From positions 181,647-245,646 of the IMG/VR virus record IMGVR_UViG_3300030098_004828: 64,000 bases of DNA; one strand, given 5' to 3'. Positions 1 to 62,169 of the stretch are shown one piece after another. Under the pieces are notes generated by a model that made no database searches, was not told the origin of the DNA, and saw only the letters and a program-made list of their open reading frames with translations. Positions within the stretch are counted from its first letter, which is position 1; each line of letters starts with the position of its first letter. The position numbers were made by a program, and so were the translations under genes.

Positions 1-2
1 GT

Positions 3-29304: not shown

Positions 29305-29312
29305 TATATTTG
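29305..29312 (+). promoter_or_regulatory. Bacteroidota -7 promoter element TATATTTG, 3 nt before ATG 29316
   Basis: Exact TAnnTTTG match in a 16-bp intergenic gap. Confidence 0.5.
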
Positions 29313-29315
29313 CAT

Positions 29316-32300: not shown

Positions 32301-35270
32301 GATATGGCCACGCAAAGAGATACACTTCTTGCATTAATGGATAAAATATATAAAAGACAAAGACAAAAAGTAATTGATGCTGTAATCTTAAGAAACTCAG
32401 AAATAAAAAAAGCTGCATCTAAATTAGAAAAATTAAGCGGGGGAAAAGTTGATTATAGTTTTATGTTAAGTTATGATCCTGAAGGTAACTTTACAGGTAG
32501 ATATGTTAAAGAAGTAGGACGTACATATTATGATAAACTAACCAAACTTAGAGAACAATTAACTGATATAGATGGTGTTTGGAAAGAGTATGTATATAAT
32601 GCAGATACATCTTGGTATGGTACAAAAGAAGGTCAAGAAGCTTTAAAACGTAATAAAGAGATACATGCTGCTAGGCAAAAGTTGCGTGAGTTTATGCAAC
32701 CTGAAAGAGTTATAGATGGTGTTCCACAAGATGGTTTAAATCATAAATATACTGCAGAGTTTAAAGAAGCTAGAGCAAAGTATCAAATTTTCAAACCTTA
32801 TAAAGGAGGTAAAGGTGGAAGATGGGTTAAAGCAGATGGTATATCTAAAGAAGAATACCAACAGTTTTTATTAAAGTATTATGATACTGTAGATTATAGT
32901 AGAGCTATATATGATCAGCAAGGAAATTTTACAGGAATGGTTCAACCAGATAGTGATTATTTTCCAAAAAGAGAGTTTACAGAAATAAGAACTGATTCTA
33001 CAATAGATGGTAAAAGTATAAAGGATGAAAAGTATGTAAAGCTTATGGAAACTGATCCTGCTGCTATGACAGAATTAGAAAAAGCACAAAAAGAATTTTA
33101 TGAAATGTATATAAAACATTTTGAAAATGACTTATTACAGAAACTTCCTCCATCAGTTATGGATCAAATGATTGGAAGAGTGCCTACAATTAAAGATAAT
33201 TTATATAATGATCTTAAAAAGAAAGGACCATTTTTTGTTAGGTTATGGGCAAAAATGACAAGAAGTATTAAGAACTTTTGGCAAACAACCTCAATTGCTA
33301 GAAAAGTTACTACAGATGAAAATGGTAATATAATAAATACTCTTCCTATTTATTATGTTGGTAAACCAAGAACAGAAAAAGAATTAGCTGATATTGAAGA
33401 TGCAATAAATAAACTTGATGCTGAATATAAAGCGCTTGATGATCCTAAACCAAAAGATGAAGATGCCTATAGAACTAAAAGAGGTGAGCTTATAGAAAAA
33501 AGAATGTCTTTACAAACAAGACCTACTGTAAATGAACTTCAAATGGATATAGCAGACAGCCTTATGAGATTTAGTATGATGGCTGAAAACTATGAGATCA
33601 TGGGTCAGATTGAAGATACTTTACATGCAATGCTTAAAGTTATTAAGCAAAGACAATATACTCCAGCTAGTGGTGAAAAATTAAGATCTATGGTTGGTGG
33701 TGTTATGAAAACTGTTGGTAGAAGAGCAACTGATGATTTAGAAGATCCTTTAATTGTTCAAAGAGCTAAGAAGTTTATGAAAATGGTTTATTATGATAAT
33801 GATAAAACAACCAAAGATATGTTTGATAAATTATCAGATGCATTAATAAGTTATACATCTTTAACTTATGTAGGTTTTAATCCATTTGGTAACTTTAATA
33901 ACTATATGGTTGGTAGAATGTCTAATTTTATAGAGACTGCTGGTGGTATGTATTATGATAGAAGAGCTGCTGGAAGAGCTATTATGGAGTTTAATAAAAG
34001 AGCAATACCAGATTTTATAAGATCTGTAGGTCATAGAACTTATTTAACTGAAAAATTAGGTATGGCTGCTGGACAATATGAAGACTATATACCTCAAAGT
34101 AAATATGAAGCAATGGTTGATTTCTTTAGAATGATGGATGCTAAAGCTGATATACGTGAAACAATAGGAAACAAAGGTAAAGATGGTGGTTGGGAAAGAT
34201 TTAAAGGATGGGGTTATATGATACAGGATGCTGCAGAATATAATGTACAAACTAAAGTAGGTATGTCAATCCTTATGACAATAAGAGCTGTAAAGCTTGA
34301 TGAAAATGGTGACATTGCAGAAGATATGTCTTTATATGATGCTCTTGATAATGATCCTCAAACTGGAGAAGTAAAATTAAAAGATGGTTTTACTCATATT
34401 CAAGAGTATAGAAATGGTAAATTAAGAACTAGAAAAAATAAAGAAGGAAAAGAAGTTGCTAGATTAAAGGAGTGGAATAATGATACTAGATATGATATTA
34501 GAAATAATATACGTGAAGTAAATAAACAAATACACGGTAACTATGCATATGAAGATAGAACTATAATGCAAACTATGGCTTTAGGTAGATTGGCAATGCA
34601 GTTTCATAAATGGGTTGCTCCAACTATTAAAGCTAGGTTTAGACCAGAATATTATGATGAAAACTTAGGATGGGTTGAAGGTAGATATTTAACAGGATGG
34701 AGTTTTATGAAATATGCTGTTACTAATTTAAGAGAAGGACGTAATGTGCTTAGAAATTGGAAAGCACAACAAGGTGCAAAAGGTGAATATAAAGTAAGAA
34801 ATTTAAAAAGAAATATAGGAGATATAACTGTAGTATTAGCTTCAATATTCTTAAAGATAATTTTAACAGCTATGCTTAAAGGCGGAGATGCAGATGATGA
34901 TGAGTCAGCATTACAAAGAAAATTAGAAAATGTTTTACTCTATCAATTAGATAGACAGAAACAAGAATTCATGATGTTCTGGCCTATATTAGGAGCTGAA
35001 GAATTATTTAAATTAAGTAAGTCCCCTTTCTCTTCATTAAGAACATTAGAAGAATTAGCTGAAGCTGGAGGTGTTACATTTAGTACTATAACTTTAGGTT
35101 TAACAAAATCTAAAGAAGATTTTTTAGCAGATAAAAGAGTTGTATATCAAAGAGGAAGTAGAACAGGACAATGGAAAATAAACAAAAATTGGATGGATGC
35201 TGTTCCACTATTATATGCTTTTGAAAAATGGAAAAAGTATATGGATCAACAAGATTTTCATGTTAAATAA
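29316..35270 (+). CDS. Large ejection/polyvalent protein (about 1984 aa): degenerate zincin, PD-(D/E)XK nuclease with LysM insert, helical C-terminus
   Basis: EEVLH at 30054-30068; SVT..AGTIDLL..VDLKT..QVNVY at 30735-31433; LysM-like YPVGPNETLDDVLNTYGLKMEELMLAN..IQIP at 30774-30926. ATG 29316 is preferred over the track's TTG 29310. Confidence 0.7.
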   Translation: MKCYNRNSGEYQELYKKYGSYLKTDMLIDEYQAVHKTDIIPTIQDVAQLQKTKRTQFSLKKKELSKAIIANLRNKGYIRKRNGQWWIVSNKQYGYNDYDFDPATFRRNAEAIKAYLRLWNIPKEFLILEFGTRKKYRGYDNNHPSLRAAEIIQWGRIEFDKDALTLEDTLPEMRSKNTTHINMLLEHLKKVFPQIGMDIVSVAEAKEYYESLPASQQMVPFSQIKSYIYDGRAKIIKGRVTAETAVEEVLHPFVNALMIENPALTKALLKEAEENFPVLAQEIIEAYSDKRGFTNRDRQNELLTQALSRHFNEEFEGKPTRGWREKILELLQWLAKHVSDIWKYVSGNELVLTAGMINEKTSMSDLARLLNTKDLQFKLDERAIKNDGKIQFKLSKRLQDILDRRFANATDAQNKTKEKLFHQGKVSKEEIDILSATGVNPVDGTKTPLTILDKGKDNKQHVYRNIATGDIGTSVTSLINGEFVQEYPVGPNETLDDVLNTYGLKMEELMLANRMTEQELKQAFKKGKNKIGRIQIPRGNEFAINREIGEDFDNIMNGLAEGLPWNEIKEDMTFERVPEALAEKFYNQVLDLLYNEVTSTPNWFSRGAIVVPQVVVSNIINTGELNSKGQPIHRFVAGTIDLLVINEDGSVFPVDLKTSWTSISDPAYNKGYPVGPGSILYDPSKSQSEQRKLSKKQRHGAQVNVYGRLLENSGYDVRGKQTNADLRAITFHFQVKLDKNNEKLVDYNYDGSKNHVPGHFDDIAEKIAPYQVDKKRQKQVQSESVDQYLEEEDNSKQLAEEEIIASDTYQAIFEVMDQFQQHLISRRKAVDRLRESVKLMGTKAQEIEKIDFAISAITLAMRDAKVDVLYTELLRDAIKQLDSFLEYIDPARGNATHPEFISKVVNFQRTLEGFQGLTKLTKNEGLTNEQLKLKDTLQTKLTEIADGGDSKINLAIDDYVRTLVRNESSRDFDDQDLDLLMRRGQDIGMAIYYTGDMATQRDTLLALMDKIYKRQRQKVIDAVILRNSEIKKAASKLEKLSGGKVDYSFMLSYDPEGNFTGRYVKEVGRTYYDKLTKLREQLTDIDGVWKEYVYNADTSWYGTKEGQEALKRNKEIHAARQKLREFMQPERVIDGVPQDGLNHKYTAEFKEARAKYQIFKPYKGGKGGRWVKADGISKEEYQQFLLKYYDTVDYSRAIYDQQGNFTGMVQPDSDYFPKREFTEIRTDSTIDGKSIKDEKYVKLMETDPAAMTELEKAQKEFYEMYIKHFENDLLQKLPPSVMDQMIGRVPTIKDNLYNDLKKKGPFFVRLWAKMTRSIKNFWQTTSIARKVTTDENGNIINTLPIYYVGKPRTEKELADIEDAINKLDAEYKALDDPKPKDEDAYRTKRGELIEKRMSLQTRPTVNELQMDIADSLMRFSMMAENYEIMGQIEDTLHAMLKVIKQRQYTPASGEKLRSMVGGVMKTVGRRATDDLEDPLIVQRAKKFMKMVYYDNDKTTKDMFDKLSDALISYTSLTYVGFNPFGNFNNYMVGRMSNFIETAGGMYYDRRAAGRAIMEFNKRAIPDFIRSVGHRTYLTEKLGMAAGQYEDYIPQSKYEAMVDFFRMMDAKADIRETIGNKGKDGGWERFKGWGYMIQDAAEYNVQTKVGMSILMTIRAVKLDENGDIAEDMSLYDALDNDPQTGEVKLKDGFTHIQEYRNGKLRTRKNKEGKEVARLKEWNNDTRYDIRNNIREVNKQIHGNYAYEDRTIMQTMALGRLAMQFHKWVAPTIKARFRPEYYDENLGWVEGRYLTGWSFMKYAVTNLREGRNVLRNWKAQQGAKGEYKVRNLKRNIGDITVVLASIFLKIILTAMLKGGDADDDESALQRKLENVLLYQLDRQKQEFMMFWPILGAEELFKLSKSPFSSLRTLEELAEAGGVTFSTITLGLTKSKEDFLADKRVVYQRGSRTGQWKINKNWMDAVPLLYAFEKWKKYMDQQDFHVK

Positions 35271-41165: not shown

Positions 41166-44100
41166 ATGAAGTCCTTTATAAGACATAGTCTAATATGGAT
41201 TGTGTTATTCCTGTGTTCTACAGTGAATGCTCAATCCATAGACTCTTGGATAGAGATAGAATTTCAATTTGATAATTATGCAGAAGAAGTATCATGGAGT
41301 TTATATAATTCCACTGATACTATTTCTATTGATACAGGTTTTTACACAGCAGGTCAACCTAATGCATATGAATTTATAGAATTAGATTCAGGAGATTATA
41401 CATTTCAATTAATGGATTCATGGGGTGATGGTTTATCATGGCCTCAAGATGGTTATTGTTTAATATCCAACGAGTGTCAAGATACTCTATTTTATGCATC
41501 AGGTAATTATGGTTTAGGTTTAATTGAATCTCTTACAATTGCTCCATGTGCTCCTCCAGAGCCTGCAGTAATTGATTGTATGGATGAAAACGCAACAAAT
41601 TATAATTCAGATGCTGATGTAAATGATCAGTCTTTATGTGAATATCCACCATGTGAAGGTTGGGGTGAACCTTTTGTAGATCAGATATGTGATGGTGGTC
41701 AAGCACTTCTTTATTGGAATTGGGAAGCTTCAGATAATCCTAATTGCAATGTAATTCAAATAACTTATAGCGGTGAAAATACTAACTCTTATAACTTTGA
41801 TGTTAATATAGACAATGGTATATGGGGTGTTTATACTGGCAATGGTCAGATGCCTCCTAATTGGGAAGAAGAATATTCATTCCAAGCAATGTTTGCTGAT
41901 AGTACTATGTCAGATACTTTAACGTATACACCATATCCGTGTACACAAGGATGTACAAATGATGATGCTCCTAATTATAATCCATGGGCTACAGTAGACG
42001 ATGGGTCATGTGGAGGTCAAGCATGTGATGTAGGATATACTTCTATAACAATAGATATAACTTTAGATAATTGGCCAAGTGAAACAGGTTGGTCATTAAT
42101 TAGTGGTGGTGTAATAGATGAACACATTGATGGAGATTATAATTATCAAGATATAGGTCAAACATTTTCATATTCTTACTGTGTAATGGAAGCCGGATTT
42201 GAATTTATTATATCAGATACATATGGTGATGGTTTAGCTGGTTCAACTACAGGCGGAGATCTGGATGGAGATGTTCTTATTAGAGGTTGTAATGGAGATA
42301 CAATAACTCAATTATCTAACGGTAATTGGTTAAACGCAGCTCAAGAAAATGTAGGTGTTGGTTTTGGTAGTGTAGCATATTCAGGATGGCAACAAGCTAT
42401 TATATGTGAAACAAATGATGTTGCAGGATGTACTAATCCAATATATCAAGAATTTAATCCAGAAGCTGTTATAGATGACGGCTCATGTGTTACAGAACAT
42501 ATATATGGTTGTATAAATGAAAATGCATTTAACTATGATGAAAATGCAACAGCAATGGATATATATCCTAACTGTAATTATGAACTGTGGATAGGAGATG
42601 CAGCTGCTGATGGTTGGGGTAATTCATTCTTAGGAGTTGTACAAGGTGACAATCAATGGACATTTACAATGGGTCCAGGAGAATATGAACAAACTTTTCC
42701 TATTTGGTTAGAGACAGATAAACCTGTAAAAATATTTTACTTTGAGGTAGGTGGAGCACAAACTCCTCCAGAAGAAGTGGCTTTTCAAACACTACATAAT
42801 TCGTTTAAATTAACTAATGCTGATGATGTTATATTAATGTATGAAGGATGGAATCCTTTTGCAAACAATGGTCAAGGTGCACTTCAAGCTTTTGAACCTC
42901 CATTCTTTCAAACATATCAAGCAATGCCTTTCTGTGGTACACTTTGTATCCCTACAGTGGAAGGTTGTTTAGATGCTACAGCACTAAACTATAATGAAGA
43001 AGCTAATACAGATGACGGTAGTTGTATAGAGATTATAGAAGGTTGTACTAATGAATTAGCTTTTAACTATGATGAAGAAGCTAACTATGATGACGGGTCA
43101 TGTGAAGCTGTAGTTGTTGGATGCATGGATGAGATAGCATGGAACTACAATGAGGATGCTAATACAGATGGTGGTGATTGTATATACTTAGGTTGTACTG
43201 ATTCTTCAGCATGTAATTTTAATCCAAATGCAAATGCAGATAGTGGAGGGTGTACTTATGCTGATCAGTATTATAACTGCAGTGATGTATGTATAAATGA
43301 TGCTGACTCAGATGGAATTTGTGATGAACTTGAAATACTAGGATGTACTAGTGTAGCTGCTATTAACTATATGCCGGAAGCAACTGATGATGATGGTAGT
43401 TGTGTTGGTATAGTATATGGCTGTACAGACCCTACTGCTTTTAATTATGACGCTACAGCTAATACAGACAATGGTTCATGTGTGCCTGTAATATACGGGT
43501 GTATAGATAGTACAGCATTTAACTATGATCCAGCTGCTAATACAGATAATGGAACTTGTGTAGAATTTGTATACGGTTGTACTGATACTACAGCTCTTAA
43601 CTTTGATCCATTAGCAAATACATTAGATAACTCTTGTTGTTATCTTGGAGGATGTATGGATTCTACTGCATTAAACTATGATGAAGATGCTTGTTTTGAT
43701 GATGGTAGTTGTATAGTTATAATAGAAGGATGTGCAGATCCTAATGCATACAACTATAATCCGCTAGTTAATTTACCAGACAATAGTACGTGTCTTTATG
43801 ATGCAGGTTGTTATAGTGGACCTGGTGAACCTTATTGGTTAAATGATCCTTGCTATGCTTGGGTTATAGATATAGATAGTTATTGTTGTACAGAAATTTG
43901 GGATGAGACTTGTCAGTCTATGTATAACTATTGTGAAGATGGCTGGCCTGTTGATTTAGATGAATTATCAGGTAGTGATATAATTGTATACCCTAATCCT
44001 ACAGCAAATACATTTACTATAGAAACAAGATTAGATATTGATGTAGAACTATATAATATAGTAGGAGAACTTATAGAAACAGATAATATTAAAAGAATAG

Positions 44101-44186
44101 ATATATCAGATTATCCTGATGGAATATATAATTTGATTATTACATATGATAAAATAAGAATAACAAAAAAAATAATTAAACTATGA
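41166..44186 (+). CDS. T9SS (Por) type-A cargo protein with about 14 GCxDxxAxNY..DGSC repeats
   Basis: Signal peptide (..STVNA|Q). C-terminal IIVYPNP..VELYNIVGELI..IDISDYPDGIYNLII..TKKIIKL (43980-44186) is a canonical T9SS type A CTD. Confidence 0.88.
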   Translation: MKSFIRHSLIWIVLFLCSTVNAQSIDSWIEIEFQFDNYAEEVSWSLYNSTDTISIDTGFYTAGQPNAYEFIELDSGDYTFQLMDSWGDGLSWPQDGYCLISNECQDTLFYASGNYGLGLIESLTIAPCAPPEPAVIDCMDENATNYNSDADVNDQSLCEYPPCEGWGEPFVDQICDGGQALLYWNWEASDNPNCNVIQITYSGENTNSYNFDVNIDNGIWGVYTGNGQMPPNWEEEYSFQAMFADSTMSDTLTYTPYPCTQGCTNDDAPNYNPWATVDDGSCGGQACDVGYTSITIDITLDNWPSETGWSLISGGVIDEHIDGDYNYQDIGQTFSYSYCVMEAGFEFIISDTYGDGLAGSTTGGDLDGDVLIRGCNGDTITQLSNGNWLNAAQENVGVGFGSVAYSGWQQAIICETNDVAGCTNPIYQEFNPEAVIDDGSCVTEHIYGCINENAFNYDENATAMDIYPNCNYELWIGDAAADGWGNSFLGVVQGDNQWTFTMGPGEYEQTFPIWLETDKPVKIFYFEVGGAQTPPEEVAFQTLHNSFKLTNADDVILMYEGWNPFANNGQGALQAFEPPFFQTYQAMPFCGTLCIPTVEGCLDATALNYNEEANTDDGSCIEIIEGCTNELAFNYDEEANYDDGSCEAVVVGCMDEIAWNYNEDANTDGGDCIYLGCTDSSACNFNPNANADSGGCTYADQYYNCSDVCINDADSDGICDELEILGCTSVAAINYMPEATDDDGSCVGIVYGCTDPTAFNYDATANTDNGSCVPVIYGCIDSTAFNYDPAANTDNGTCVEFVYGCTDTTALNFDPLANTLDNSCCYLGGCMDSTALNYDEDACFDDGSCIVIIEGCADPNAYNYNPLVNLPDNSTCLYDAGCYSGPGEPYWLNDPCYAWVIDIDSYCCTEIWDETCQSMYNYCEDGWPVDLDELSGSDIIVYPNPTANTFTIETRLDIDVELYNIVGELIETDNIKRIDISDYPDGIYNLIITYDKIRITKKIIKL
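42960..43800 (+). repeat. Coding tandem array of about 27-aa Cys/Asp/Asn repeats (GC[TM]D..A.NY...A..DDGSC)
   Basis: Ten copies in this interval, four more upstream in the same ORF. Divergent at DNA level. Confidence 0.85.
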
Positions 44187-44385: not shown

Positions 44386-44637
44386 ATGCCACAAGGAAAA
44401 GGAACTTATGGGTCTCAAGTAGGTAGACCAAGAAAAACACAAAAAGGAGGTGCTTCTTGTTCATTAAAAGTTAAAGGTGTAAACATTTGTTCATTAACCA
44501 AAAGACAACAAACTTCATTGCAAAAACATGCAGAACATCATACTAAAAAACATATTCAAGCTATGGTAAACGCAATGAACAATGGTGCTAGTTTTACTCA
44601 ATCACATAAAGATGCAATGCAAAAAGTAGGAAAATGA
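44386..44637 (+). CDS. Small basic protein: MPQGKGTYGSQVGRP module fused via QKGG to a LTKRQ..KHAEHH..KH module
   Basis: Both halves resemble recurrent small basic proteins of aquatic phages. Confidence 0.6.
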   Translation: MPQGKGTYGSQVGRPRKTQKGGASCSLKVKGVNICSLTKRQQTSLQKHAEHHTKKHIQAMVNAMNNGASFTQSHKDAMQKVGK

Positions 44638-45692
44638 GAATAATTTTATACATATTATTACTTTTATCATTTACGATAAATGCACAAGAAGAAAGTAAAT
44701 TTAAAAAAGAACTTAAAAAAACTTTTAAATTTTCTACATTCTATGCTGCAGTAAATGGTGGTACTTCTATTTCAGATCAAAATGTATATTCTGTATTAGA
44801 TCAACTTCAAACCGATGTAATAGAAACTCCATTTGATTACGCACTAACTCTAGGTGTAAGAAAGATACAAAGATTTGGATACGAAAACAAGGCTAACACA
44901 TTCAAAGACGGTACAGAAACTTCATACTCTGATGCCGCTACAATAGGACGAACTAAAGGATTTGAGTTTTTATTTGAGATGGATTACCAAAGAAGATTTG
45001 GTGATACATATATAGATCAGAATCACTTTCTACGATACTTAGCAGATAAATGGGTTGTTAAGGTGGAGTATTTACAAGATGGCTTTGCTGATGTAGAATA
45101 CATGGAAGCATCACAACGATATAGACAAAAGATAGGTAAGAGATTTTCACTTACTGCAGGGACAGCACAAAGGATCTCCGAACCTTATGGATTTGATCCG
45201 TTAGCTCAGTGGTTGTTATCCAACGGGAACTTACACTACACAAACCTTGCTTTAGAGGAAGGCTACTCAATTGGTTTTGCACCAACAGGAATAGAATACT
45301 TAGACCCTAGTGGAGCGGTCGTGGCTACAAGCAGTGAAGTTTGGGAAGAGGTGGTAATACCGCAAATGCTTGATGACTATGTTAAAGCAAGTAAAGATGC
45401 ATTACCAGTACAATGGTGTCACTCTTTAGTAATTGGCTTTGACTATTATTACTATACAAAAAAGATCTGGTTACACTCATGGGGTAATGTGCTTCCTGTT
45501 CATCTTAACACAGGAGGAGAATACTCATATCACAATTTTAATAATGGTAATTGGATAGATTATTCTGGTGGTTTAATATTTGGATATAAGATCAATAAGA
45601 ACTTAGGTATCTTTGTTGAGGGTAAATATAACAAATATTGGAATAGAAACTGGCATGATTTCAAGTTTGGAATAAATTATATTATTCTTTAG
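44634..45692 (+). CDS. Outer-membrane beta-barrel protein, Bacteroidota type (352 aa)
   Basis: Sec signal (..FTINA|Q), alternating aromatic strands and a terminal strand WHDFKFGINYIIL. Confidence 0.7.
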   Translation: MRIILYILLLLSFTINAQEESKFKKELKKTFKFSTFYAAVNGGTSISDQNVYSVLDQLQTDVIETPFDYALTLGVRKIQRFGYENKANTFKDGTETSYSDAATIGRTKGFEFLFEMDYQRRFGDTYIDQNHFLRYLADKWVVKVEYLQDGFADVEYMEASQRYRQKIGKRFSLTAGTAQRISEPYGFDPLAQWLLSNGNLHYTNLALEEGYSIGFAPTGIEYLDPSGAVVATSSEVWEEVVIPQMLDDYVKASKDALPVQWCHSLVIGFDYYYYTKKIWLHSWGNVLPVHLNTGGEYSYHNFNNGNWIDYSGGLIFGYKINKNLGIFVEGKYNKYWNRNWHDFKFGINYIIL

Positions 45693-45967: not shown

Positions 45968-46330
45968 ATGGCAACATTAAACACAACAGTTAAATTAGAG
46001 ACATCTTCTTCAGTAGCAGGTGTGTTAAAATTAGATTTTACTAATACACAACCTTTTACAATTGGAGATGTTGCTGGTGATGATCTTACTGTTAATGCAT
46101 TAACTTCTCTTGTAGCAACTGGATATGGTGCTACAGCTTATGTTTATGTAGTGAATACAGCAAGTGATGCTGCACATACAATAGCATTAATGACTGATGC
46201 TGGTGTACAATGGGGTACTTTAGAAGCCGGTGAATGGGGATTTTTTGCAATTCCTAATGGAACAGGATTTAAAGTACAAGCTGATGCTGGAGTACCTGTG
46301 CTTAATTATGTTATAATGAAAAAAGCATAA
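45968..46330 (+). CDS. Small beta-rich putative virion protein, paralog 3
   Basis: AYVYVVNT..GTLEAGEWGFFAIP. Confidence 0.55.
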   Translation: MATLNTTVKLETSSSVAGVLKLDFTNTQPFTIGDVAGDDLTVNALTSLVATGYGATAYVYVVNTASDAAHTIALMTDAGVQWGTLEAGEWGFFAIPNGTGFKVQADAGVPVLNYVIMKKA

Positions 46331-46334
46331 ACCA

Positions 46335-46595
46335 ATGTTTAAAGGATTAAAAAATATAAAAGTCACTGATACGAGAACTCAGATGACTTTTTGTGCAAGT
46401 TGTAAAACTTGTCCAGCTATAGATATCTCAACTGAATCTGACAAAGTAATTGTTGGAGGTGATGATGAAGGATATACTGAATTTACAAAAGATCAATTTG
46501 CTCTTTTTGTAAAGACAGTTAAAGCTGGAACTTATGATAAATATTTACCAGAAGAAGGAGCAGATCTTAATGAGGACGTTCCTTTTGGAGACTAA
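46335..46595 (+). CDS. Small protein with DUF397-like pattern
   Basis: CASCKTCPAIDI..VIVG..EFTKDQFALFVKTVKAGTYD resembles the C..V..VRD..F..W..F..VK.G pattern. Confidence 0.35.
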   Translation: MFKGLKNIKVTDTRTQMTFCASCKTCPAIDISTESDKVIVGGDDEGYTEFTKDQFALFVKTVKAGTYDKYLPEEGADLNEDVPFGD

Positions 46596-46612: not shown

Positions 46613-47257
46613 ATGCCACAATTAGGAAATAAAAAATATTCATATGACGCAGATGGAATGCGTGAATATATAAAAGATAAAAATGCTATATCTAAAGCTA
46701 TGTATGGTAGATCTCATTTTCCAATAGATGAAGCTAAAAATGGTGGTGATGATAAGAAATATAAAAAAGGTGATGATATTTTAGAGCACCTTAATATACA
46801 TAGTTCAGATAGAACAGATAAAGGTGGTAAACCTGGTGATATAGATGGGGACGGTATTCCTGAAAACTATGTAGATAGTGATAAAAGAAAAGGTAATTTA
46901 AAACAAACTGGTTGGAGAAGATATCTAGATAAAAATGCTGGTGTTGATTTAGAATTACTTGCAGATGATTTAAAAACAGGAAACTATAAAGGTAAAAGAG
47001 AGGGTCATAAATCTGCTCTTGATAAATATTTTGGATTTTTTAATAAGCAGACAGCAAAGGTGTTTAATGCAATAGATAAAATGCAAAATAAACCTCCAAA
47101 ATATTCTAATGAAGAAATAGAAAACATGACTGGTGGTCTTTCAGGAGAAGGTTTAGGAAGACAGTTTTTAAGTAATGGTGGCCGAGTCAAAGGAATAAAT
47201 GGTGCAAAAAATATGAACGTTCCTGGAATGATAAAGGGAACGTTTAACGGTAAATAG
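46613..47257 (+). CDS. Basic protein with C-terminal PGMIKG tag
   Basis: Ends LSNGG-RVKG..VPGMIKGTFNGK; internal DIDGDGIPE loop. Confidence 0.7.
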   Translation: MPQLGNKKYSYDADGMREYIKDKNAISKAMYGRSHFPIDEAKNGGDDKKYKKGDDILEHLNIHSSDRTDKGGKPGDIDGDGIPENYVDSDKRKGNLKQTGWRRYLDKNAGVDLELLADDLKTGNYKGKREGHKSALDKYFGFFNKQTAKVFNAIDKMQNKPPKYSNEEIENMTGGLSGEGLGRQFLSNGGRVKGINGAKNMNVPGMIKGTFNGK

Positions 47258-47286
47258 TAATTAATTAATTTTAAAAATAAATAGTC

Positions 47287-48513
47287 ATGGCAAATGGTGT
47301 AACAAAAATGAGTAAAACAGACGATAAATCTAAAAAAAAGAAAACTAGATTTACAGGTCAAGGTAATAAAGGTGGAAAAGGTAAATTTAAAACTACTAAA
47401 GAATCTGGACAACAAGGTATAAATAAAGCAGGGTTTTTAGGACCTTTAAATCCTTTTAGAAAGAAAATTAAAAATGAAGACGGTTCAACAACTACTTATA
47501 ACAGAATTACCGGTAAGAAAATAAAAACAAAAGGTAAAGATGCAGATGGTAATACTTATAAAATAAAGTATAAAGGTAAAGATGGTAATATATCTAAGAT
47601 CAAACAAAAAGATTCTAAAGTAAAGTATGACAAGAAAACAGGTAATATTAGAAAAACAAAAGTTACTGTTAGAGATGAAGATGGTAAAAGAACTGGTACT
47701 GAAAAAAATAAATTTGATAAAGACGGAAATCTTAAAAAATACAAAAAAACAAGAGGAATTTTTAAAAGATCTGAAAAAATTAAGTTTAAAAAAGATGATG
47801 AAACTGGTGCTAATATAATCAGAAAACAAAAAAATGTTAAAGCTAAAACAGGTCCAGGAGGTCAAATGACTGGTGATTTAGAAAGCTCTCCGGGTTACAA
47901 GTATAAAGTTAAAAAGAAAGGTGACGGTATACAAGTAAAAGAAAAAGGTGTTGATGTAGAAACTGGATGGGGTACTACTAAAAAAGGTACTAAGAAAACA
48001 CGATATGATGCTGATGGCAATCAAATAAGTGTTAAGACTAGACCAGGTGGTCTTCATACATCTACAACAAAAAAAGGTGATGGAAGTAAGTTTGAACCTA
48101 AAGGAAACTTTAGTGATGTACAATCACCTGAGACTCAAACTGAAACTCAAACTGAGACTCAGAATCAAACTGATACAAACACTGATACAAATACAAATAC
48201 TGATACAAATACAGATACTAAAAAAGACTCTACTTATGGAAGTAAGCGAGCTGAATATGCTGGTCAAAATATATCAGATGCACAGTTTGTTGAAAAAGAT
48301 GGTAAGAAAAATCTTAGATCTTATAAAGAAGTTTGGAAGACTGATAAAGCTACTAGAGATAAGTATGGTAACAAGTATGATGACTATGTTAAAGATGCTG
48401 AATCTTACTGGAAGAAAAAAGGACTTAGTAGAGGTGGTGAAAGACGTTTAGGCGGGGCTATAACAGGTCAAGCTAGATATGGTGGATCTATGGGACCACA
48501 AGGTATATTATAA
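47287..48513 (+). CDS. Very Lys-rich beta-hairpin repeat protein with C-terminal GPQGIL tag (408 aa)
   Basis: Repeated K.K.D.DG hairpins, a Thr-x spacer and a YKE.W..DYV..AE module; ends ARYGG-SMGPQGIL. Confidence 0.7.
   Translation: MANGVTKMSKTDDKSKKKKTRFTGQGNKGGKGKFKTTKESGQQGINKAGFLGPLNPFRKKIKNEDGSTTTYNRITGKKIKTKGKDADGNTYKIKYKGKDGNISKIKQKDSKVKYDKKTGNIRKTKVTVRDEDGKRTGTEKNKFDKDGNLKKYKKTRGIFKRSEKIKFKKDDETGANIIRKQKNVKAKTGPGGQMTGDLESSPGYKYKVKKKGDGIQVKEKGVDVETGWGTTKKGTKKTRYDADGNQISVKTRPGGLHTSTTKKGDGSKFEPKGNFSDVQSPETQTETQTETQNQTDTNTDTNTNTDTNTDTKKDSTYGSKRAEYAGQNISDAQFVEKDGKKNLRSYKEVWKTDKATRDKYGNKYDDYVKDAESYWKKKGLSRGGERRLGGAITGQARYGGSMGPQGIL
48130..48219 (+). repeat. Coding low-complexity repeat ETQTETQTETQNQTDTNTDTNTNTDTNTDT
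   Basis: Imperfect 6/12-nt tandem units (actgaaactcaa / actgatacaaat). Confidence 0.85.
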
Positions 48514-48698
48514 TGGTTGGTGTTTTACTAGCACGTTTATTGGGGAAGCCTTACATAAAAAGTCAGGTTCCCCCTCCTACAAAATATCAAGCTCCTGTGG
48601 GGCGAGATAATTACCTAGGAATAGGTACTATGAAAATAAAAAAGGGTGGTAGTATATGTAGATCTGGTTGTGCTGTAGGACCTAATAATGTTTTATAA
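48513..48698 (+). CDS. 61-aa protein with C-terminal GPNNVL tag
   Basis: Ends IKKGG-SICRSGCAVGPNNVL; TAATG-coupled to the previous gene. Confidence 0.65.
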   Translation: MVGVLLARLLGKPYIKSQVPPPTKYQAPVGRDNYLGIGTMKIKKGGSICRSGCAVGPNNVL

Positions 48699-48699
48699 T

Positions 48700-49080
48700 A
48701 TGGATGAGAAAAAATTACAAATGTATATGAAGATGATCCTGCAAGGGAACATTCCTTTTGCTCCACCTAAAAGTCCTGAATGGGAGATGGCTGAAAAGAC
48801 AATCTTTAAACAACAGGAAGGTGAAAAGAAAAATTTAGATCTAAAACTTGATACAGAACAGCTTACTAATAAAGCAGATTCTTTATTTAAAGTAGTGACA
48901 AATGAATTAAAAAAGATTAATATTGATAATGGCGGGTGTTTTCCTGGTAAAATAGATATTAAAGATGGTACAAGGTTTCCTGGAGGATGTTTTCCAAGTA
49001 CTAAAAGTACAAAACCTTTAGGCGGCATAATTATAGCCAAAAAAAGAGGAGGCGCAGTAGGGCGCAATGGGGTTTTATAA
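48700..49080 (+). CDS. 126-aa protein with C-terminal GRNGVL tag
   Basis: Ends KPLGG-IIIAKKRGG-AVGRNGVL; two GGCFP repeats. ATG 48700 is preferred over the track's 48688. Confidence 0.65.
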   Translation: MDEKKLQMYMKMILQGNIPFAPPKSPEWEMAEKTIFKQQEGEKKNLDLKLDTEQLTNKADSLFKVVTNELKKINIDNGGCFPGKIDIKDGTRFPGGCFPSTKSTKPLGGIIIAKKRGGAVGRNGVL

Positions 49081-49095
49081 ACTAAAAATTAAAAT

Positions 49096-49497
49096 ATGGG
49101 AGTATTAAATAAATTATTCTCTGGAGGAGCTAGTAAACTAGTTGAATCAGTAGGTGGTGTTATAGATAATTTAGTGACGACAGATGAGGAAAAGCTTGAT
49201 GCAAAGAGAAAGCTAAAAGAACTAATCATGAACCATGAGGTTCAGATGGAAAAAAATATAACTGACCGTTGGACTGCAGATATGAATTCTGACAGTTGGT
49301 TAAGTAAAAATGTAAGACCTATGGTCCTCATTTTTTTAATTGTTTGTACTATGATATTAATCTTTATTGATGCTGGTACAATTAAATTTGAAGTAGAAGA
49401 AAAATGGACAGATTTATTACAGTTAGTACTGATCACTGTAATAGGTGCTTATTTTGGAGGAAGATCAGTAGAAAAGTTTAATAAAAAAAAGAAATAG
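49096..49497 (+). CDS. Holin, 3TM (GTA-holin/DUF3154-like)
   Basis: IDNLVTTDEEK..DSWLSKNVRP..TM..GAYFGGRS.EK is the family signature. Confidence 0.85.
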   Translation: MGVLNKLFSGGASKLVESVGGVIDNLVTTDEEKLDAKRKLKELIMNHEVQMEKNITDRWTADMNSDSWLSKNVRPMVLIFLIVCTMILIFIDAGTIKFEVEEKWTDLLQLVLITVIGAYFGGRSVEKFNKKKK

Positions 49498-49499
49498 TT

Positions 49500-49970
49500 A
49501 TGCCTAATAATTTAAAAAAAGCTGGTATTAAATATAAAAAAGGTAAAGAAGTTTATAATAATGGCGGTGGTAATCCAAATATTCAACCTACAGCTACAGA
49601 TACATTACAAGCTTATATGCATCAAGTAGTACCAGGCTCTGTTTCAGGACAAGTAGATAATCTTAAGTCAGGTTTAATGGATGATGCTAAAAAATCACAT
49701 GATTTAACAGGTGATATGACTTATCAAGATTTTAAGGATGCTGCAGACCGTTTGGGTCTTAACACTAGAACAGATGTAATGAAGCATTTAACAGGTAAAA
49801 CTCCAGATGATTTACATTGGACTAAAAGGGGTTTACTCAAAAGTATAGTTGACATGGATAAAAGTTTAAGAACAGGTGGTGCTACACCAGGTAGTCCTGT
49901 ATATGCAGCTAAAAATAGTACTTATAAAGGTGGACCAGCACCTGGAATGATTAATGGAACTTTTAAATAA
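49500..49970 (+). CDS. Basic protein with C-terminal PGMING tag
   Basis: Ends STYKGG-PAPGMINGTFK. Confidence 0.7.
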   Translation: MPNNLKKAGIKYKKGKEVYNNGGGNPNIQPTATDTLQAYMHQVVPGSVSGQVDNLKSGLMDDAKKSHDLTGDMTYQDFKDAADRLGLNTRTDVMKHLTGKTPDDLHWTKRGLLKSIVDMDKSLRTGGATPGSPVYAAKNSTYKGGPAPGMINGTFK

Positions 49971-49978
49971 TATATACC

Positions 49979-50338
49979 ATGGATGAAGAACAAATAAAAA
50001 TGCTCCAAGAGCTACATAATAAAAAAACAGAAGATAAGTTTAAGGATCCAGATGGTAACATGGGAAATTCTGGAACTTTACGAGAAAGATTAGATTCAAT
50101 TTCTAACAGTGCAGATGTAAACAAAGCAGATGAATGGTGGAAAAAAATACAGCATGGAAATGACGATCCTAAAGGTCCAGGAAATTTAAAAGATGATCAT
50201 GGTGATATGTATGACAAATCAAAAATTAAAACTAATCCTGCTTTAGATTATCTTTTAAAAAATAAAGAGTCTGTTGAAGGAGTTGGTGGATGGAAAGGTA
50301 AATCAGTTCCTGGTATGATAAAAGGAAGACATAAATAA
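49979..50338 (+). CDS. Protein with C-terminal PGMIKG tag
   Basis: Ends EGVGG-WKGKSVPGMIKGRHK. Confidence 0.7.
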   Translation: MDEEQIKMLQELHNKKTEDKFKDPDGNMGNSGTLRERLDSISNSADVNKADEWWKKIQHGNDDPKGPGNLKDDHGDMYDKSKIKTNPALDYLLKNKESVEGVGGWKGKSVPGMIKGRHK

Positions 50339-50463
50339 TGGCAAAAGGAAATACATTTACTTTTAGAGGTAGTCACAGTAAAAAAAGACGTGGTGTTCAT
50401 TCTAAGAATGCTAGCAGGTCTCAAAATGCATATAAAAAAGTATATAGAGGACAAGGAAGATAA
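50338..50463 (+). CDS. 41-aa basic protein MAKGNTFTFRGSHSKKRRGVHSKNASRSQNAYKKVYRGQGR
   Basis: Hand translation; TAATG-coupled. The ..G.HSK..KK.YRGQGR ending is recurrent in aquatic phages. Confidence 0.7.
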   Translation: MAKGNTFTFRGSHSKKRRGVHSKNASRSQNAYKKVYRGQGR

Positions 50464-50497
50464 AAAAAGAGGAGACTATTGATCTCCTCTTTCTTTT
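50464..50497. terminator. Bidirectional intrinsic terminator at the convergence of the late and replication arms
   Basis: Stem AAAGAGGAGA (50466-50475) / TCTCCTCTTT (50483-50492), 7-nt loop, A-run to the left and T-rich to the right. Confidence 0.8.
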
Positions 50498-51619: not shown

Positions 51620-52486
51620 TTAAAATATATATCTAATTTTATTCCAAGGTATTACATTATCATGTACTTTTGTAAATGATTCTATAAATCCTTGCTTTAA
51701 TACTCTTTTATATCTAATATTTTTTCCTCCATATTGTGAGGTTTTTTCTTCTTGTATATCTGGTTGCCATAGATCTTTTTCTGTATGTGGATGATTTAAT
51801 AAATTTCTATAATGTTTGCTTTCATTGTGTGTTAAAAATATACATTCTGCTAATACATTTTCTTCATCTCTAACATTATTATTAATTAAAGCAAATAGCT
51901 CTTCATAATCATCTAACCAACCATCATATACGATAATAGGACTAAAATTAAGATGCACTTCATAACCTGCTTTTTTAAATTCATCTATTGCTTGTATTCT
52001 TTCTAATATAGTAGAGGTATTTGGTTCATGTATTTGTCTTTTGTGTTCAGGCATTAGACTAAATCTAATCCTTACTTTTTGTTGAGGGTCATATTTAAGT
52101 AATTCTGGATTAACATATTTAGTTGCAAAACTTGCCATTGCTTTATCATGATGTTTAAAGAAATTAAATATTCTTTTCCATTCATGATATTTAGCATGAA
52201 GAGCAAAGTCTTCATTACAACTTATGTCATAAGTAATATATTTTGGATGTGTTTGATTTGGTTTTTCTACTTCTAATTGTGCAAATATAGCATGGTTATT
52301 TATTTCTGTTAAAATTTGATTTGTGTTTTTAGCTATAGATAATCCTTCAGATTTATGCCTTTTCATATAGCAATATGAGCACTCATATAAACACCCCCAG
52401 CCAAAACTAGGAGATATAAAGTCTGTAGATCTACCCGAAGGTCTAATCTTCAGACTTTTTCTAATATCTCTTGTAATTACTGTCAT
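51620..52486 (-). CDS. splB: Spore photoproduct lyase family radical SAM protein
   Basis: GCLYECSYCY (CxxxCxxC), YDISCNED (aligns with the SplB catalytic Cys segment), FATKY, RIRFS, AGY..SPII. Confidence 0.8.
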   Translation of the reverse strand: MTVITRDIRKSLKIRPSGRSTDFISPSFGWGCLYECSYCYMKRHKSEGLSIAKNTNQILTEINNHAIFAQLEVEKPNQTHPKYITYDISCNEDFALHAKYHEWKRIFNFFKHHDKAMASFATKYVNPELLKYDPQQKVRIRFSLMPEHKRQIHEPNTSTILERIQAIDEFKKAGYEVHLNFSPIIVYDGWLDDYEELFALINNNVRDEENVLAECIFLTHNESKHYRNLLNHPHTEKDLWQPDIQEEKTSQYGGKNIRYKRVLKQGFIESFTKVHDNVIPWNKIRYIF

Positions 52487-59839: not shown

Positions 59840-60998
59840 TTATTTCATTGTCATTTTGATGATTTCTGGATTCATCATCATCTTGTTAAACTTAGTTTTA
59901 TTACCGTTGAAAATAGTTCTAACAATAAGATATTTCAGATCATTAGCAAATACATCTTTAGTACATAATGCTATCAATCTTTCATTTATCTTTGGTGTTA
60001 CAGTATTTTCATTAGCATAAACAACTGAATAGTTAGCTAACCTTGTTGCAAGAGTAGATGCAATATCTGCTCTATATGTGTCACCTTTTCCTAGAACACT
60101 ATTTAATNNNNNNNNNNGAACCTTCACCAATCATTTGGATCATACTCAAGTCATCTTCAAACTTTTCAAAACTTGAAATAGAATTGAAGAATGCTGTGAT
60201 GGATCTTGCATTTGTTTCTTTATTTACTAACTCAGGATGCAGTAATAAGAAGTTAATACAACGAGTGTCAATATGCTGTTCTTCAGCCCATCTTGCCCAT
60301 ACGTTTGCATCAAACTTTAGGTTAGCAGTAATATATCTAGTCTTTTGTGCTGAGTCAATACTATTAACCATATAGTCACCATTATCTGGATTACTGGTTA
60401 GTATAATATGCCAATCAGCCGGTAAAGACCAAGATATATATTGTTGTCTGTCAACCAATTCCATTACAGCTTGAATAAATCTAACATCTGCTCTGTTCCA
60501 GTCGTCAAGAAGAAGTATACCTCCTTTCTTTTTATCAGCAATCCATTCTGGTGCACAATAAGACATTCTATTCTTACCGGTCATCTTCCATCCTTTTCTT
60601 AAATACTCTTCAACTGCAAGTTCATCAACCCATTGACCAATCTTCTTAGTCATAGTAGAGTCTGCAACTTGTGCAGATGCTGCAGCTTTCTGAGCTACTG
60701 TATATTGAAGGTCATCAATCTTCTTAGGGACTTGTTTTTCTCTAAACATTTGAAATTGTCTAACAGGAAAACCTACTAAATCACCTAATTCTTCTATCTG
60801 AGCTAAATTAAGCTTAACAAAATCTAATTCATTTTCTTTAGCTAGATCTAGTACAGCAGATGTTTTACCAATACCTGATTCACCAACTACTTCTACAGCA
60901 ACTGGATTTTTCCCTTGCTCTTGTAAGAATCTATTATTCTTTATTATATGGTTTACAAAACCGTTTAATTCATCTATATTTAAATTTACTTGTGCCAT
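59840..60998 (-). CDS. MoxR-like AAA+ ATPase, interrupted by a scaffold gap
   Basis: Walker A GESGIGKT, Walker B LLLDDWNR, ILTSNP, DSAQKTR. The two track ORFs (60099-60998 and 59840-60130) flank the N run. Confidence 0.85.
60108..60117. other. Assembly gap (10 N)
   Basis: Seen directly; true length unknown. Confidence 0.99.
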
Positions 60999-60999
60999 T

Positions 61000-62169
61000 T
61001 TATTGTGCGTTTAATTGTATTGTTTTTCCTGGTAAATGATCAGTCCATTGAGAATCTGCACTAAGAACCCATAATGTGTTCTTTGGACAGTCTTCTGGAG
61101 CTGGTGCTTCACCATCTGTTAAATATATAAGGGCAGTATATCTACCTTTTCTTTCATTGAAATGGTCAATAACCGGTTGGAAGCATGTGCCTCCTCTACC
61201 TTTTATTTGCCAATCCTTTCTACTATTAAAAGGGGATATATCACTAATACCTGTGTCACATTGTGCTACAGTTATTTGATGTCCCGTTTTCTGAACATGA
61301 ACCATCTCACTCATGAAATGTTCTAGTTCCTTCGTGTTAACAGATCCTGAAGTATCAACACCAATCAATATATGATTCTTGTGTTTTATCTTAAGACCTG
61401 GATTATCTGTATATCTTTTGTTGAATTTTCTTCTCAACTTCTTTGTGAAAGTAAACACGGAATTACCCACAAATCTTTTTAAATAACCTTTCCAATCAAA
61501 TGATGGAGGTAGCACTGTTCTTAACCTTTTAATTAGTTCGGCTAATTCACCTGGAATAGTTCCTCTTCTTTTTTCAGTTTGTTCTGCAGTTTCTTTAAGC
61601 TGATGCTCAATTTGTCTTTGAACTAGCTTCTTTTCTGCTTCTGCAAGTTCTTCAAACTCTTCCCATGTCTTATGATCATACTGACTGTCACCATCCATCT
61701 GATCTAATATAGATTGCAGTGACTGACAAGGATTATCCTTGCATTCTTGTTCCAATAAGTCATAATATTTTTTAGTACCGGCTTTTCTTGGTAGTTTTAG
61801 TTCAGCAAAACTATCTAAAGTTAAACCACCTTCAGGAAGCATGTTTTTATCTATATACTGATTGATCTCAAGATCTGCAGCAATATTAAACAACTTCTTG
61901 TTAGGATAAGAGTCTCTCATCATAAGATGCCCAAATGAAACATGTAATAGTTCATGTTTAAGTAAACCTATCTGGTGTTCATCTGATAATCCCATAAAGA
62001 AATCCGGGTTAATAGATAATTGTATACCTATACCATTTTTACTGACACCCGCTGTTGGGACGTCTTTTCTTATTTTCTTGTTAAGTCCAATTAAAAAGAG
62101 CCCATAAAAGGGCTCTCTTAATATTAGTGACTTACAAGCTCTTGCTAGTTTATCCTGTATGTCCATCAT
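61000..62169 (-). CDS. DUF2201-type metallopeptidase-like domain plus VWA domain protein
   Basis: LLKHELLH (HExxH), NIAADLEINQ, MIDAS GVDTSGS, GRGGT.F.P, IYLTDG. Confidence 0.88.
   Translation of the reverse strand: MMDIQDKLARACKSLILREPFYGLFLIGLNKKIRKDVPTAGVSKNGIGIQLSINPDFFMGLSDEHQIGLLKHELLHVSFGHLMMRDSYPNKKLFNIAADLEINQYIDKNMLPEGGLTLDSFAELKLPRKAGTKKYYDLLEQECKDNPCQSLQSILDQMDGDSQYDHKTWEEFEELAEAEKKLVQRQIEHQLKETAEQTEKRRGTIPGELAELIKRLRTVLPPSFDWKGYLKRFVGNSVFTFTKKLRRKFNKRYTDNPGLKIKHKNHILIGVDTSGSVNTKELEHFMSEMVHVQKTGHQITVAQCDTGISDISPFNSRKDWQIKGRGGTCFQPVIDHFNERKGRYTALIYLTDGEAPAPEDCPKNTLWVLSADSQWTDHLPGKTIQLNAQ

Follow-up and report, generated by a model that had tools for sequence, protein, structure and literature searches.

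A fast-changing cluster of small, basic, probably unfolded late proteins is carried by an uncultured group of marine crAss-like phages, and over 120 of these proteins end in the same ten-residue tail, which looks like a shared docking or address tag for a partner that remains inferred. The tail was first seen in a 64,000-nt stretch of IMG/VR record IMGVR_UViG_3300030098_004828 (positions 181,647 to 245,646; hereafter the window), where a preliminary description made from sequence alone had proposed that six unrelated small late proteins share a GG followed by one of two conserved C-terminal tails, termed class A and class B. We found that this observation holds and is much larger than could be seen from the window. 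The accompanying interpretation, in which variable payloads carry a cleavable C-terminal address tag for loading into the head or binding a shared partner, is only partly supported.

Six open reading frames share two C-terminal motifs

All six ORFs and their tails were recovered (Table 1), with GG lying 8–24 residues from the C-terminus in each. A six-frame scan of the whole window detected G[PR][QN][GN][IV]L and PGMI[KN]G only in these six ORFs and always at the C-terminal end. The three synonymous codon versions of PGMI cited in the preliminary description are present in the sequence. To evaluate whether the ORFs are simply recent paralogs, a possibility that had been set beforehand as a test, we removed the last 14 residues and compared the six bodies by BLASTP, which returned no significant pairwise similarity (best E = 0.56 in a six-sequence database).

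Table 1. Features of the tagged-protein island and its borders in the window
Coordinates	Strand	Feature	Tail or motif (coordinates)	Observations
46335..46595	+	86-aa Cys-containing protein, acidic C-terminal end		Conserved; directly upstream of the island in every tail-bearing relative with enough flank; left border
46613..47257	+	214-aa basic protein	Class B at C-terminal end, ...PGMIKGTFNGK (tail from GG: 47177-47254)	Body also holds an EF-hand/dockerin-like loop
47287..48513	+	408-aa lysine-rich, low-complexity protein	Class A, GGSMGPQGIL (48481-48510)	Orthologues in relatives L007 (365 aa) and L063 (306 aa) keep the tail
48513..48698	+	61-aa protein	Class A, ...AVGPNNVL, preceded by a Cys pair (GGSICRSGCAVGPNNVL, 48645-48695)	Start overlaps the previous stop (TAATG)
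48688..49080	+	130-aa protein (126 aa if it starts at 48700)	Class A, GGAVGRNGVL (49048-49077)	
49096..49497	+	Holin-like membrane protein, not tagged		Embedded in the island; conserved anchor used to collect relatives; phrog_3427, E=1e-32; PF11351, just under the curated cut-off; 433 relatives at 75-100% identity
49500..49970	+	156-aa protein of the MPANMKKAGI N-terminal family	Class B at end, ...PGMINGTFK (49929-49967)	Relatives with the same N-terminus carry class A tails or other tails; ESM Atlas model pLDDT 0.41
49979..50338	+	119-aa protein	Class B at end, ...PGMIKGRHK (50285-50335)	
50338..50463	+	41-aa very basic protein		Conserved; closes the island in most relatives
50462..50496	.	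Strong bidirectional terminator-like hairpin		Ends the late operon, between convergent genes

Class A is strictly C-terminal, whereas class B is position-independent

To characterize the motifs beyond the window, we collected related contigs via the holin-like gene. Within these contigs, the class A core ([K][K/R/P][Y/F/H]-GG-[A/S]-V-G-P-N-G-[I/V]-L-stop) is followed directly by a stop in 77 of 78 distinct contexts. Across 82 unique tails, G-P-N-G-[IV]-L is near-invariant, GG occupies positions -10/-9 in about 75%, and K/R is found at -13/-12. Third codon positions use all synonymous codons while the amino acids are invariant, and all three stop codons are used, so selection acts on the peptide rather than on a DNA repeat, as the preliminary description had claimed. 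In total, 91 distinct proteins were found in viral contigs (31–408 aa) and 72 distinct class A ORFs, some shared with the first set, in marine metagenomes; pooling yielded 121 distinct proteins of at least 50 aa. The bodies fall into at least 26 BLAST clusters, counted on 87 tagged proteins that include a few class B ones. The tail is confined to one low-GC marine phage lineage: it is absent from GenBank phages, and the same DNA pattern gives only about chance-level, scattered hits in 596 Gb of bacterial genomes.

The proposal that class B is likewise a C-terminal address tag is not supported, because in relatives about half the copies of its motif (GG-x-V...VPGM-x-x-G) are N-terminal, internal or repeated within a protein. 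Modularity of the tails, however, is real. Homologous bodies carry different tails (L007:6402-6893 has tail B and L026:3799-4623, from a further relative, has tail A, and the two share the segment just before the tail), and one N-terminal domain family carries three tail versions.

Tagged proteins are basic, predicted disordered and encoded in a hypervariable late island

The phage is crAss-like, as judged by its muzzle protein, ring proteins and RNA-polymerase subunit. The tagged genes are co-oriented and tightly packed around the holin-like gene at the end of the late operon, downstream of the muzzle and RNA-polymerase genes, and the island turns over completely between phages whose holins are 99% identical. 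Of the 121 pooled proteins, 117 lie on the disordered side of the charge-hydropathy plot, with a median pI of 10.1 compared to 5.2 for 33 control ORFs, and the tail region is unstructured in an AF2 model (pLDDT about 40). None of the 91 proteins from viral contigs contains a Pfam domain, and no PHROG or Pfam hit was obtained for any tagged protein. GG is itself enriched throughout the bodies (125 observed against 85 ± 8 expected, z = 5.1), with a recurring context [Y/W/M]-[Q/R]-[E/K]-GG-[S/A]-[V/I].

A docking peptide is the tentatively favored explanation

Collectively, we interpret the six ORFs as members of a lineage-specific, hypervariable island of small, lysine-rich, predicted disordered late proteins of a marine crAss-like phage of Bacteroidota. 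In this view the proteins are mosaics of short linear motifs: a cationic, often amphipathic N-terminus; internal [Y/W/M]-x-x-GG-[S/A]-[V/I] units; EF-hand-like loops; the roughly 20-residue class B unit; and, at the very end, the class A decapeptide preceded by basic residues. The class A tail would be a docking peptide that must be C-terminal and is read by one conserved phage-encoded partner. Most plausibly, it would bring an exchangeable set of DNA-associated small proteins into the assembling virion so that they travel with the genome. GG and its neighbors are more likely part of the recognized or flexible element than a proven cleavage site.

The strict terminal position, the conservation and codon variation of the tail, its exchange between homologous bodies, its restriction to one lineage, the composition of the bodies and the genomic context are established by our analysis, whereas partner binding, virion location, packaging and any cleavage at GG are inferred, the packaging role largely by analogy to published systems. 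We therefore hold this reading only tentatively. The crAss-like context makes cargo plausible, given that crAss001 stores about 5.5 MDa of cargo proteins (PMC10172136), but there is no direct evidence that any tagged protein is in a virion and no partner was identified. The giant presumed cargo and RNA-polymerase ORFs of the window lack the tails, indicating that the tail is not a general cargo code, and the island surrounds a holin-like gene rather than the head genes. Furthermore, the cultured marine crassvirus phi14:2 has no comparable island or shared C-termini, co-occurrence with conserved neighbors is lineage-wide and points to no particular partner, and no prohead or GG-specific protease was found in the parts of the genome examined.

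A bolder form of this reading, which we consider possible but less likely than not on present evidence, is that a tailed phage uses a C-terminal cargo-loading peptide, a counterpart of encapsulin targeting peptides and a C-terminal mirror of the T4 capsid targeting sequence. The decapeptide would bind a conserved pocket of the capsid, portal or an adaptor, and any small protein acquiring it would be packaged and injected with the DNA, giving these phages a plug-and-play, rapidly shuffled arsenal of injected proteins.

Comparison with known targeting systems

The preliminary description knew of no account of such a code, a statement that is not supported given related systems in the literature. 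The closest is the capsid targeting sequence (CTS) of the T4 internal proteins (IPI, IPII, IPIII, Alt), which travel with the DNA, are diverse, share only this sequence and contact DNA through lysines (PMC3012670); the P1 DarB N-terminal packaging signal is a second case (PMC9024508), and foreign proteins can be packaged by adding the tag (PMC3012670, PMC9024508). As in these systems, a short terminal peptide is the only conserved part of a diverse, polymorphic set of small basic proteins encoded by late genes in a variable locus. However, the T4 and P1 signals are N-terminal while the class A tail is strictly C-terminal, there is no sequence similarity, the T4 CTS, a peptide of about 10 residues, directs the protein into the scaffolding core and is removed by the prohead protease after Glu while cleavage and virion location here remain hypothetical, and the phage is a crAss-like podovirus-type virus rather than a T4-like one.

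Encapsulin cargo carries C-terminal targeting peptides of about 10 residues that are Gly-rich, have spaced small hydrophobic anchors, follow a flexible linker and bind the inner face of an HK97-fold shell (native example NTGGDLGIRK, consensus DGSLGIGSLKG; PMC7925596). The class A tail resembles these in being a short, Gly-rich, predicted unstructured C-terminal peptide with hydrophobic anchors, but its consensus (GG[AS]VGPNG[IV]L) contains no GSL or LGI unit, its neighbors are a holin-like gene and small conserved ORFs instead of a shell gene, and encapsulin cargos are enzymes rather than dozens of disordered basic proteins; capsid binding by the tail would be by analogy only, the capsid gene of this lineage not having been identified.

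The crassvirus cargo proteins (crAss001 gp45, gp46, gp47, gp49 and gp50) are likewise encoded downstream of the muzzle gene in the late operon of the same type of phage. They are large, folded helical proteins for which no shared tag is described, whereas the tagged proteins are small, predicted disordered, unrelated in sequence, encoded after the RNA-polymerase genes, and without detectable homology to gp45, gp46 or the RNA-polymerase cargo proteins. C-terminal short linear motifs that recruit many partners to one hub, such as the acidic SSB tail, offer a general analogy, relying on an unstructured, conserved extreme C-terminus whose free end is needed while the rest varies; in those cases one protein binds many partners through its tail, whereas here many proteins carry one tail, which would imply a single receptor.

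Two GG-containing signals do not fit. Double-glycine leaders (C39 peptidase substrates) are N-terminal and end in GG, whereas here GG lies near the C-terminus, and the GlyGly-CTERM/rhombosortase signal requires a transmembrane helix and a basic cluster after GG, whereas only 8 mostly small residues follow GG in the canonical tail. Adenain-type (M/I/L)-x-G-G sites have a hydrophobic residue at P4 and GG at P2-P1, and are cut by a virus-encoded clan CE protease; some sites here match (M-Y-G-G, M-C-G-G), most have K/R or aromatic residues before GG, and no such protease was found in the parts of the genome examined.

Alternative explanations

The strongest alternative, although unlikely, is docking inside the infected cell, in which the tail recruits a changing set of small host-takeover or counter-defense proteins to one conserved hub (a phage protein or a host machine), in the manner of SSB-tail or clamp-binding motifs. 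Hypervariable islands of small orphan genes are typical of accessory and counter-defense genes, the tail is terminal and predicted unstructured, and the giant cargo proteins lack it. Conversely, the tail occurs only at about chance level in bacterial genomes, so it does not copy a host motif, the genes sit in the late operon with structural and lysis genes, and the uniformly basic, disordered make-up fits nucleic-acid association better than a set of varied inhibitors.

Somewhat less likely, the proteins may be lysis-associated, membrane-active cationic amphipathic proteins released with the holin to disrupt the envelope (disruptin-like, replacing spanins), with the tail as an envelope or partner docking element. 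The genes directly flank, and are translationally coupled to, the holin-like gene; the first 20 residues carry a median net charge of +5 (compared to +1 in controls); 23% have strongly amphipathic cationic N-termini (compared to 0% of controls); and no spanin or endolysin was recognized near the holin. However, up to six or more different members per genome, lengths up to 408 aa and complete turnover between close relatives are not expected for a lysis function, closely related holins occur in phages without any tagged proteins, and there are no signal peptides.

Two further possibilities appear improbable to a similar degree. First, the tail or the preceding GG may be a protease recognition site, either for a maturation cut at GG (adenain or double-glycine style) or as a C-terminal degron read by a tail-specific protease, controlling maturation or lifetime rather than location. 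GG enrichment in the bodies, basic residues before the terminal GG, the non-polar tail end and metallopeptidase-like domains in the genome (a reprolysin-like domain in the muzzle protein and DUF2201) favor this, but no protease with known GG specificity was found in the parts of the genome examined, the distance of GG from the end varies, about 25% of class A tails lack GG at -10/-9, and the most conserved residues are G-P-N-G-[IV]-L, not the GG. Second, all members may descend by duplication from one small gene, with the disordered bodies diverged beyond recognition and the tail simply the most constrained structural remnant, without address function. Some subsets are clearly homologous families, N-terminal motifs recur (MPGK..., MPANMKK...) and disordered proteins diverge quickly, but lengths range from 31 to 408 aa, the same N-terminal family carries tails A, B or others while the same tail sits on different N-terminal families, and a ten-residue unstructured end conserved at nearly 100% still needs a binding partner to explain it. 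Finally, a DNA- or RNA-level element (recombination site, terminator or coupling signal) is effectively refuted by the codon and stop-codon variation, and the GC3 of the tails (0.19) is close to that of the bodies (0.16), despite its position at gene junctions and a differing Gly codon choice (GGG 18% in tails against 4% in bodies).

Implications

If the tail is an address tag, it would be the first C-terminal packaging code described for a tailed phage and the first handle on how crAss-like phages choose part of their protein cargo, and would suggest a simple way to load foreign proteins into phages of Bacteroidota. If it does not serve packaging, it still defines a large family that our searches did not find described (the motif strings occurred in no relevant paper in the literature searched, and there is no Pfam or PHROG match), with more than 120 members in ocean metagenomes. 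These members are motif-built, predicted disordered phage proteins that all point to one unknown receptor, which makes that receptor, and the function of a hypervariable island in an abundant uncultured marine phage group, directly testable.

Confirmation of the tagged ORFs

An ORF listing of the window confirmed the six ORFs, their lengths and their C-terminal tails exactly as given in the preliminary description. A six-frame scan of the whole 64 kb recovered the class A core G[PR][QN][GN][IV]L three times and the class B core PGMI[KN]G three times, in every case within these ORFs, with class A always immediately before the stop and class B 3-5 residues before it. Upon removal of the last 14 residues, the six bodies showed no significant pairwise similarity (best E = 0.56), and the synonymous codon variants claimed earlier between copies of the motif are present in the sequence. 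The genes are tightly packed, with overlapping stop and start codons, lie on the same strand as the upstream giant genes, and are closed by a strong bidirectional terminator.

Phage context

The window is the last 64 kb of a 245.6-kb IMG/VR contig with a GC content of about 30%. Several lines of evidence place it among crAss-like phages: its first ORF is the end of a larger protein with a crAss muzzle match, its relatives carry CrAss_Ring_2, CrAss_Ring_1 and crAss_MUZ in the crAss001 order, and a 1,986-aa ORF resembles crAss 'RNA-polymerase subunit' proteins. A type IX secretion sorting domain on a 1,006-aa ORF points to a Bacteroidota host. Related contigs are 110-125 kb and come from marine samples, and no cultured relative exists in the GenBank phage collection. 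Sequence searches of the PDB returned no hits for head-module ORFs, and a Pfam search of the head module gave only fn3. Features of the window and of related loci are collected in the table below.

Coordinates and properties of features in the window and in the loci compared (L-prefixed names are loci used in this analysis)
Location	Strand	Feature
Window 1-1883 and L127:2-11833		First window ORF, the C-terminal part of a protein of at least 3,943 aa with a crAss muzzle match plus a reprolysin-like zinc-metallopeptidase domain; in relatives the muzzle-like protein is about 2,600 aa and carries a VWA domain instead
Window 12920-29299 and 29310-35270		5,459-aa ORF with no Pfam match at all, followed by the 1,986-aa ORF, whose resemblance to crAss 'RNA-polymerase subunit' proteins is weak (22-24% identity over about 500 aa); presumably giant virion cargo
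Window 41166-44186 and 44634-45692		Two phage-encoded envelope-directed proteins: the 1,006-aa protein, whose type IX secretion sorting domain is C-terminal, and a 352-aa protein with a signal peptide and an outer-membrane-barrel-like C-terminal end, conserved across the lineage
Window 45968-46330		120-aa protein predicted with high confidence (pLDDT 93) as a small jellyroll; one to three copies around the holin in relatives
Window 46335-46595		Highly conserved 86-aa protein with invariant C-x-x-C-x-x-C-P and an acidic end ...DLNEDVPFGD that recalls SSB-type acidic tails; some relatives add a Cys-rich insert
Window 46820-46870; L026:3799-4623; L014:16-195		Single EF-hand/dockerin-like calcium-loop motifs (D-x-[DN]-x-DG-x-[IV]-x-x-x-D) recurring inside the tagged proteins
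L007:6402-6893		Tail B protein sharing an EF-hand-like segment just before the tail with L026:3799-4623 (tail A)
Window 49096-49140 and the N-termini of several tagged proteins in relatives		N-terminus of the holin-like protein (M-[SG]-[IV]-L-x-K-[IL]-F-S-G), resembling the N-termini of several tagged proteins (MSIFNKIFRK, MKIFNKLRKK)
Window 50462-50496		Bidirectional terminator closing the gene cluster
Window 60099-62169 and 51620-52486	- and -	Early/replication strand encoding a DUF2201 metallopeptidase-VWA protein next to a weak, sub-threshold AAA-ATPase-like match (PF13191, E = 0.0044), and a spore-photoproduct-lyase-like radical SAM protein
IMGVR_UViG_3300030098_004828 (L002 and L047)		The 245.6-kb source contig; two holin-like genes, 86% identical, about 120 kb apart, each with its own different set of tagged proteins; probably two related genomes of about 120 kb joined in assembly
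L008:1584-2437; L062:3235-4740; L078:5033-5776		Further arrays in relatives of very small basic proteins matching DUF5872 and DUF6321 (function unknown); in L008 and L033 one class A protein sits next to them, outside the main island

Class A tails across relatives

To assess whether the tails recur on other bodies, a check that had been proposed beforehand, we used the holin-like gene inside the cluster (phrog_3427, PF11351) as an anchor; it has 433 relatives at 75-100% identity, of which 80 loci were fetched. In these loci, class A tails end many different ORFs on the holin strand, mostly just upstream of the holin. Some relatives that share the holin are tail-less (for example the contigs of L052, L058, L061, L062 and L078). 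Pooling these with pattern scans of IMG/VR and metagenomes gave 91 distinct class A proteins from viral contigs and 72 distinct class A ORFs from metagenomes, with some overlap between the two sets, for a total of 121 distinct proteins of at least 50 aa. Bodies fall into at least 26 BLAST clusters, counted on 87 tagged proteins that include a few class B ones. The core is followed by a stop in 77 of 78 contexts. The resulting logo is [K][K/R/P][Y/F/H/S]-G-G-[A/S]-V-G-P-N-G-[I/V]-L, in which G(-6) and L(-1) are invariant, P and N occur in 74 of 82 tails, and GG is at -10/-9 in about 75%. Third codon positions use all synonymous codons and all three stops; selection therefore acts on the peptide. 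Glycine codon choice in the class A tails of all loci differs from that in the bodies (GGG 18% against 4%, GGT 27% against 59%); overall GC3 is similar.

The tail is confined to this lineage. The pattern was found in 31 stretches in 2.9 million viral contigs, nearly all from these contigs, and in 19 scattered hits in 596 Gb of bacterial genomes, which is about the chance number and includes none in marine Flavobacteriia. About 38 of 58 metagenome stretches are low-GC marine contigs with real tagged ORFs, whereas the rest are high-GC chance hits that do not lie at ORF ends. The sample sets that hold the tail-bearing contigs are TARA Oceans and JGI marine sets. A short tail query found no match among GenBank phages, and the cultured marine crassvirus phi14:2 has no comparable island or shared C-termini. 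A word-index protein search restricted to the tail region found only the query's own cluster, and a tail profile run against 1.84 billion representative proteins found five true small tailed proteins and three repeat-protein false positives, the motif being too short for this search. A full-text literature search for the motif strings matched only two unrelated rhabdovirus-peptide papers.

Class B as a recurring module

In relatives, the class B motif is a roughly 20-residue unit, GG-x-V-[Y/K]-x-x-x-G-x-x-[V/A]PGM-x-x-G, and about half of its copies are at N-termini, internal, or repeated within one protein. It is a recurring module, not the C-terminal tag that was first proposed. Because it begins like the class A tail (GG-x-V), the two may be related.

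Nature of the tagged proteins and their island

The proteins are basic (median pI 10.1, 96% above 9), and 117 of 121 fall on the disordered side of the charge-hydropathy plot, compared to a median pI of 5.2 and 7 of 33 on the disordered side for the 33 control ORFs of the window. The one window protein with an ESM Atlas model has a pLDDT of 0.41, and Atlas look-alikes were only unnamed viral clusters. An AF2 model of the best-sampled family gives a moderately confident helical N-domain and an unstructured tail region (pLDDT about 40). None of the 91 class A proteins has a credible Pfam domain, and no known family was found in PHROGs or Pfam for any tagged protein. N-termini are cationic and often amphipathic, and GG is enriched in the bodies (z = 5.1) with a recurring context. 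Furthermore, the proteins are mosaics: the MPANMKKAGI N-terminus occurs with tail A, tail B, other tails or none, a tail B protein of locus L007 and a tail A protein of locus L026 share the segment just before the tail, and one N-domain family carries three versions of the tail region.

The island turns over completely between phages whose holins are 99% identical, while the flanking genes stay 77-88% identical. Its left border is always the 86-aa ORF, which sits directly upstream and for which a PDB sequence search found no relative. The 120-aa ORF lies further left, separated from the island by the 86-aa ORF; it is multi-copy in uncultured marine viruses, its best structural matches are several paralogues in 'Virus NIOZ-UU157' (TM up to 0.91), and its PDB matches (Ena fibre subunits, carbohydrate-binding modules) are weak. 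We also sought a partner by co-occurrence, but the five conserved neighbours that track the tails (352-aa, 49-aa, 86-aa, 41-aa and the convergent 106-aa ORF) track the lineage as a whole, so the comparison is not informative.

Interpretation

The observation in the preliminary description holds and extends well beyond the six window ORFs; its interpretation, variable payloads bearing a cleavable C-terminal address tag, is supported only in part. Of the simpler accounts considered, recent paralogy is rejected for the six window proteins by the absence of similarity between their bodies, although some subfamilies are homologous and the proteins are mosaics. A copy of a host motif, or a prophage origin, finds no support in the bacterial genomes searched. 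A DNA repeat or RNA element is rejected by free synonymous variation, and chance by the uniqueness of the motifs to the six ORFs in the window, the terminal position of the core, the merely scattered, chance-level hits in bacterial genomes, and the high-GC metagenome hits not being at ORF ends. Cleavage at GG is possible but unsupported, given that the most conserved residues lie after the GG, the GG spacing varies, and GG units occur throughout the bodies.

The sequence data establish the tail, its position and its conservation; the identity of the receptor, and where it takes the proteins, are inferred. Loading into the virion is the favoured reading, for reasons that include the late-operon position, the crAss-like context, with megadaltons of cargo in crAss001 (PMC10172136), the basic, DNA-friendly make-up, as in T4, where lysines of internal proteins contact DNA (PMC3012670), and the formal likeness to encapsulin C-terminal targeting peptides (PMC7925596). 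Against this reading, the giant presumed cargo proteins lack the tail, the island surrounds a holin-like gene, phi14:2 has no such island, no partner was found, and no prohead or GG-specific protease was found in the parts of the genome examined. A terminal address peptide on diverse phage proteins is in itself a known kind of system, but this C-terminal form, its sequence and its host phage group were not found described in the searches run here. A ten-residue, unstructured, strictly terminal peptide kept nearly invariant on more than a hundred otherwise unrelated proteins implies a single conserved receptor that needs the free C-terminus.
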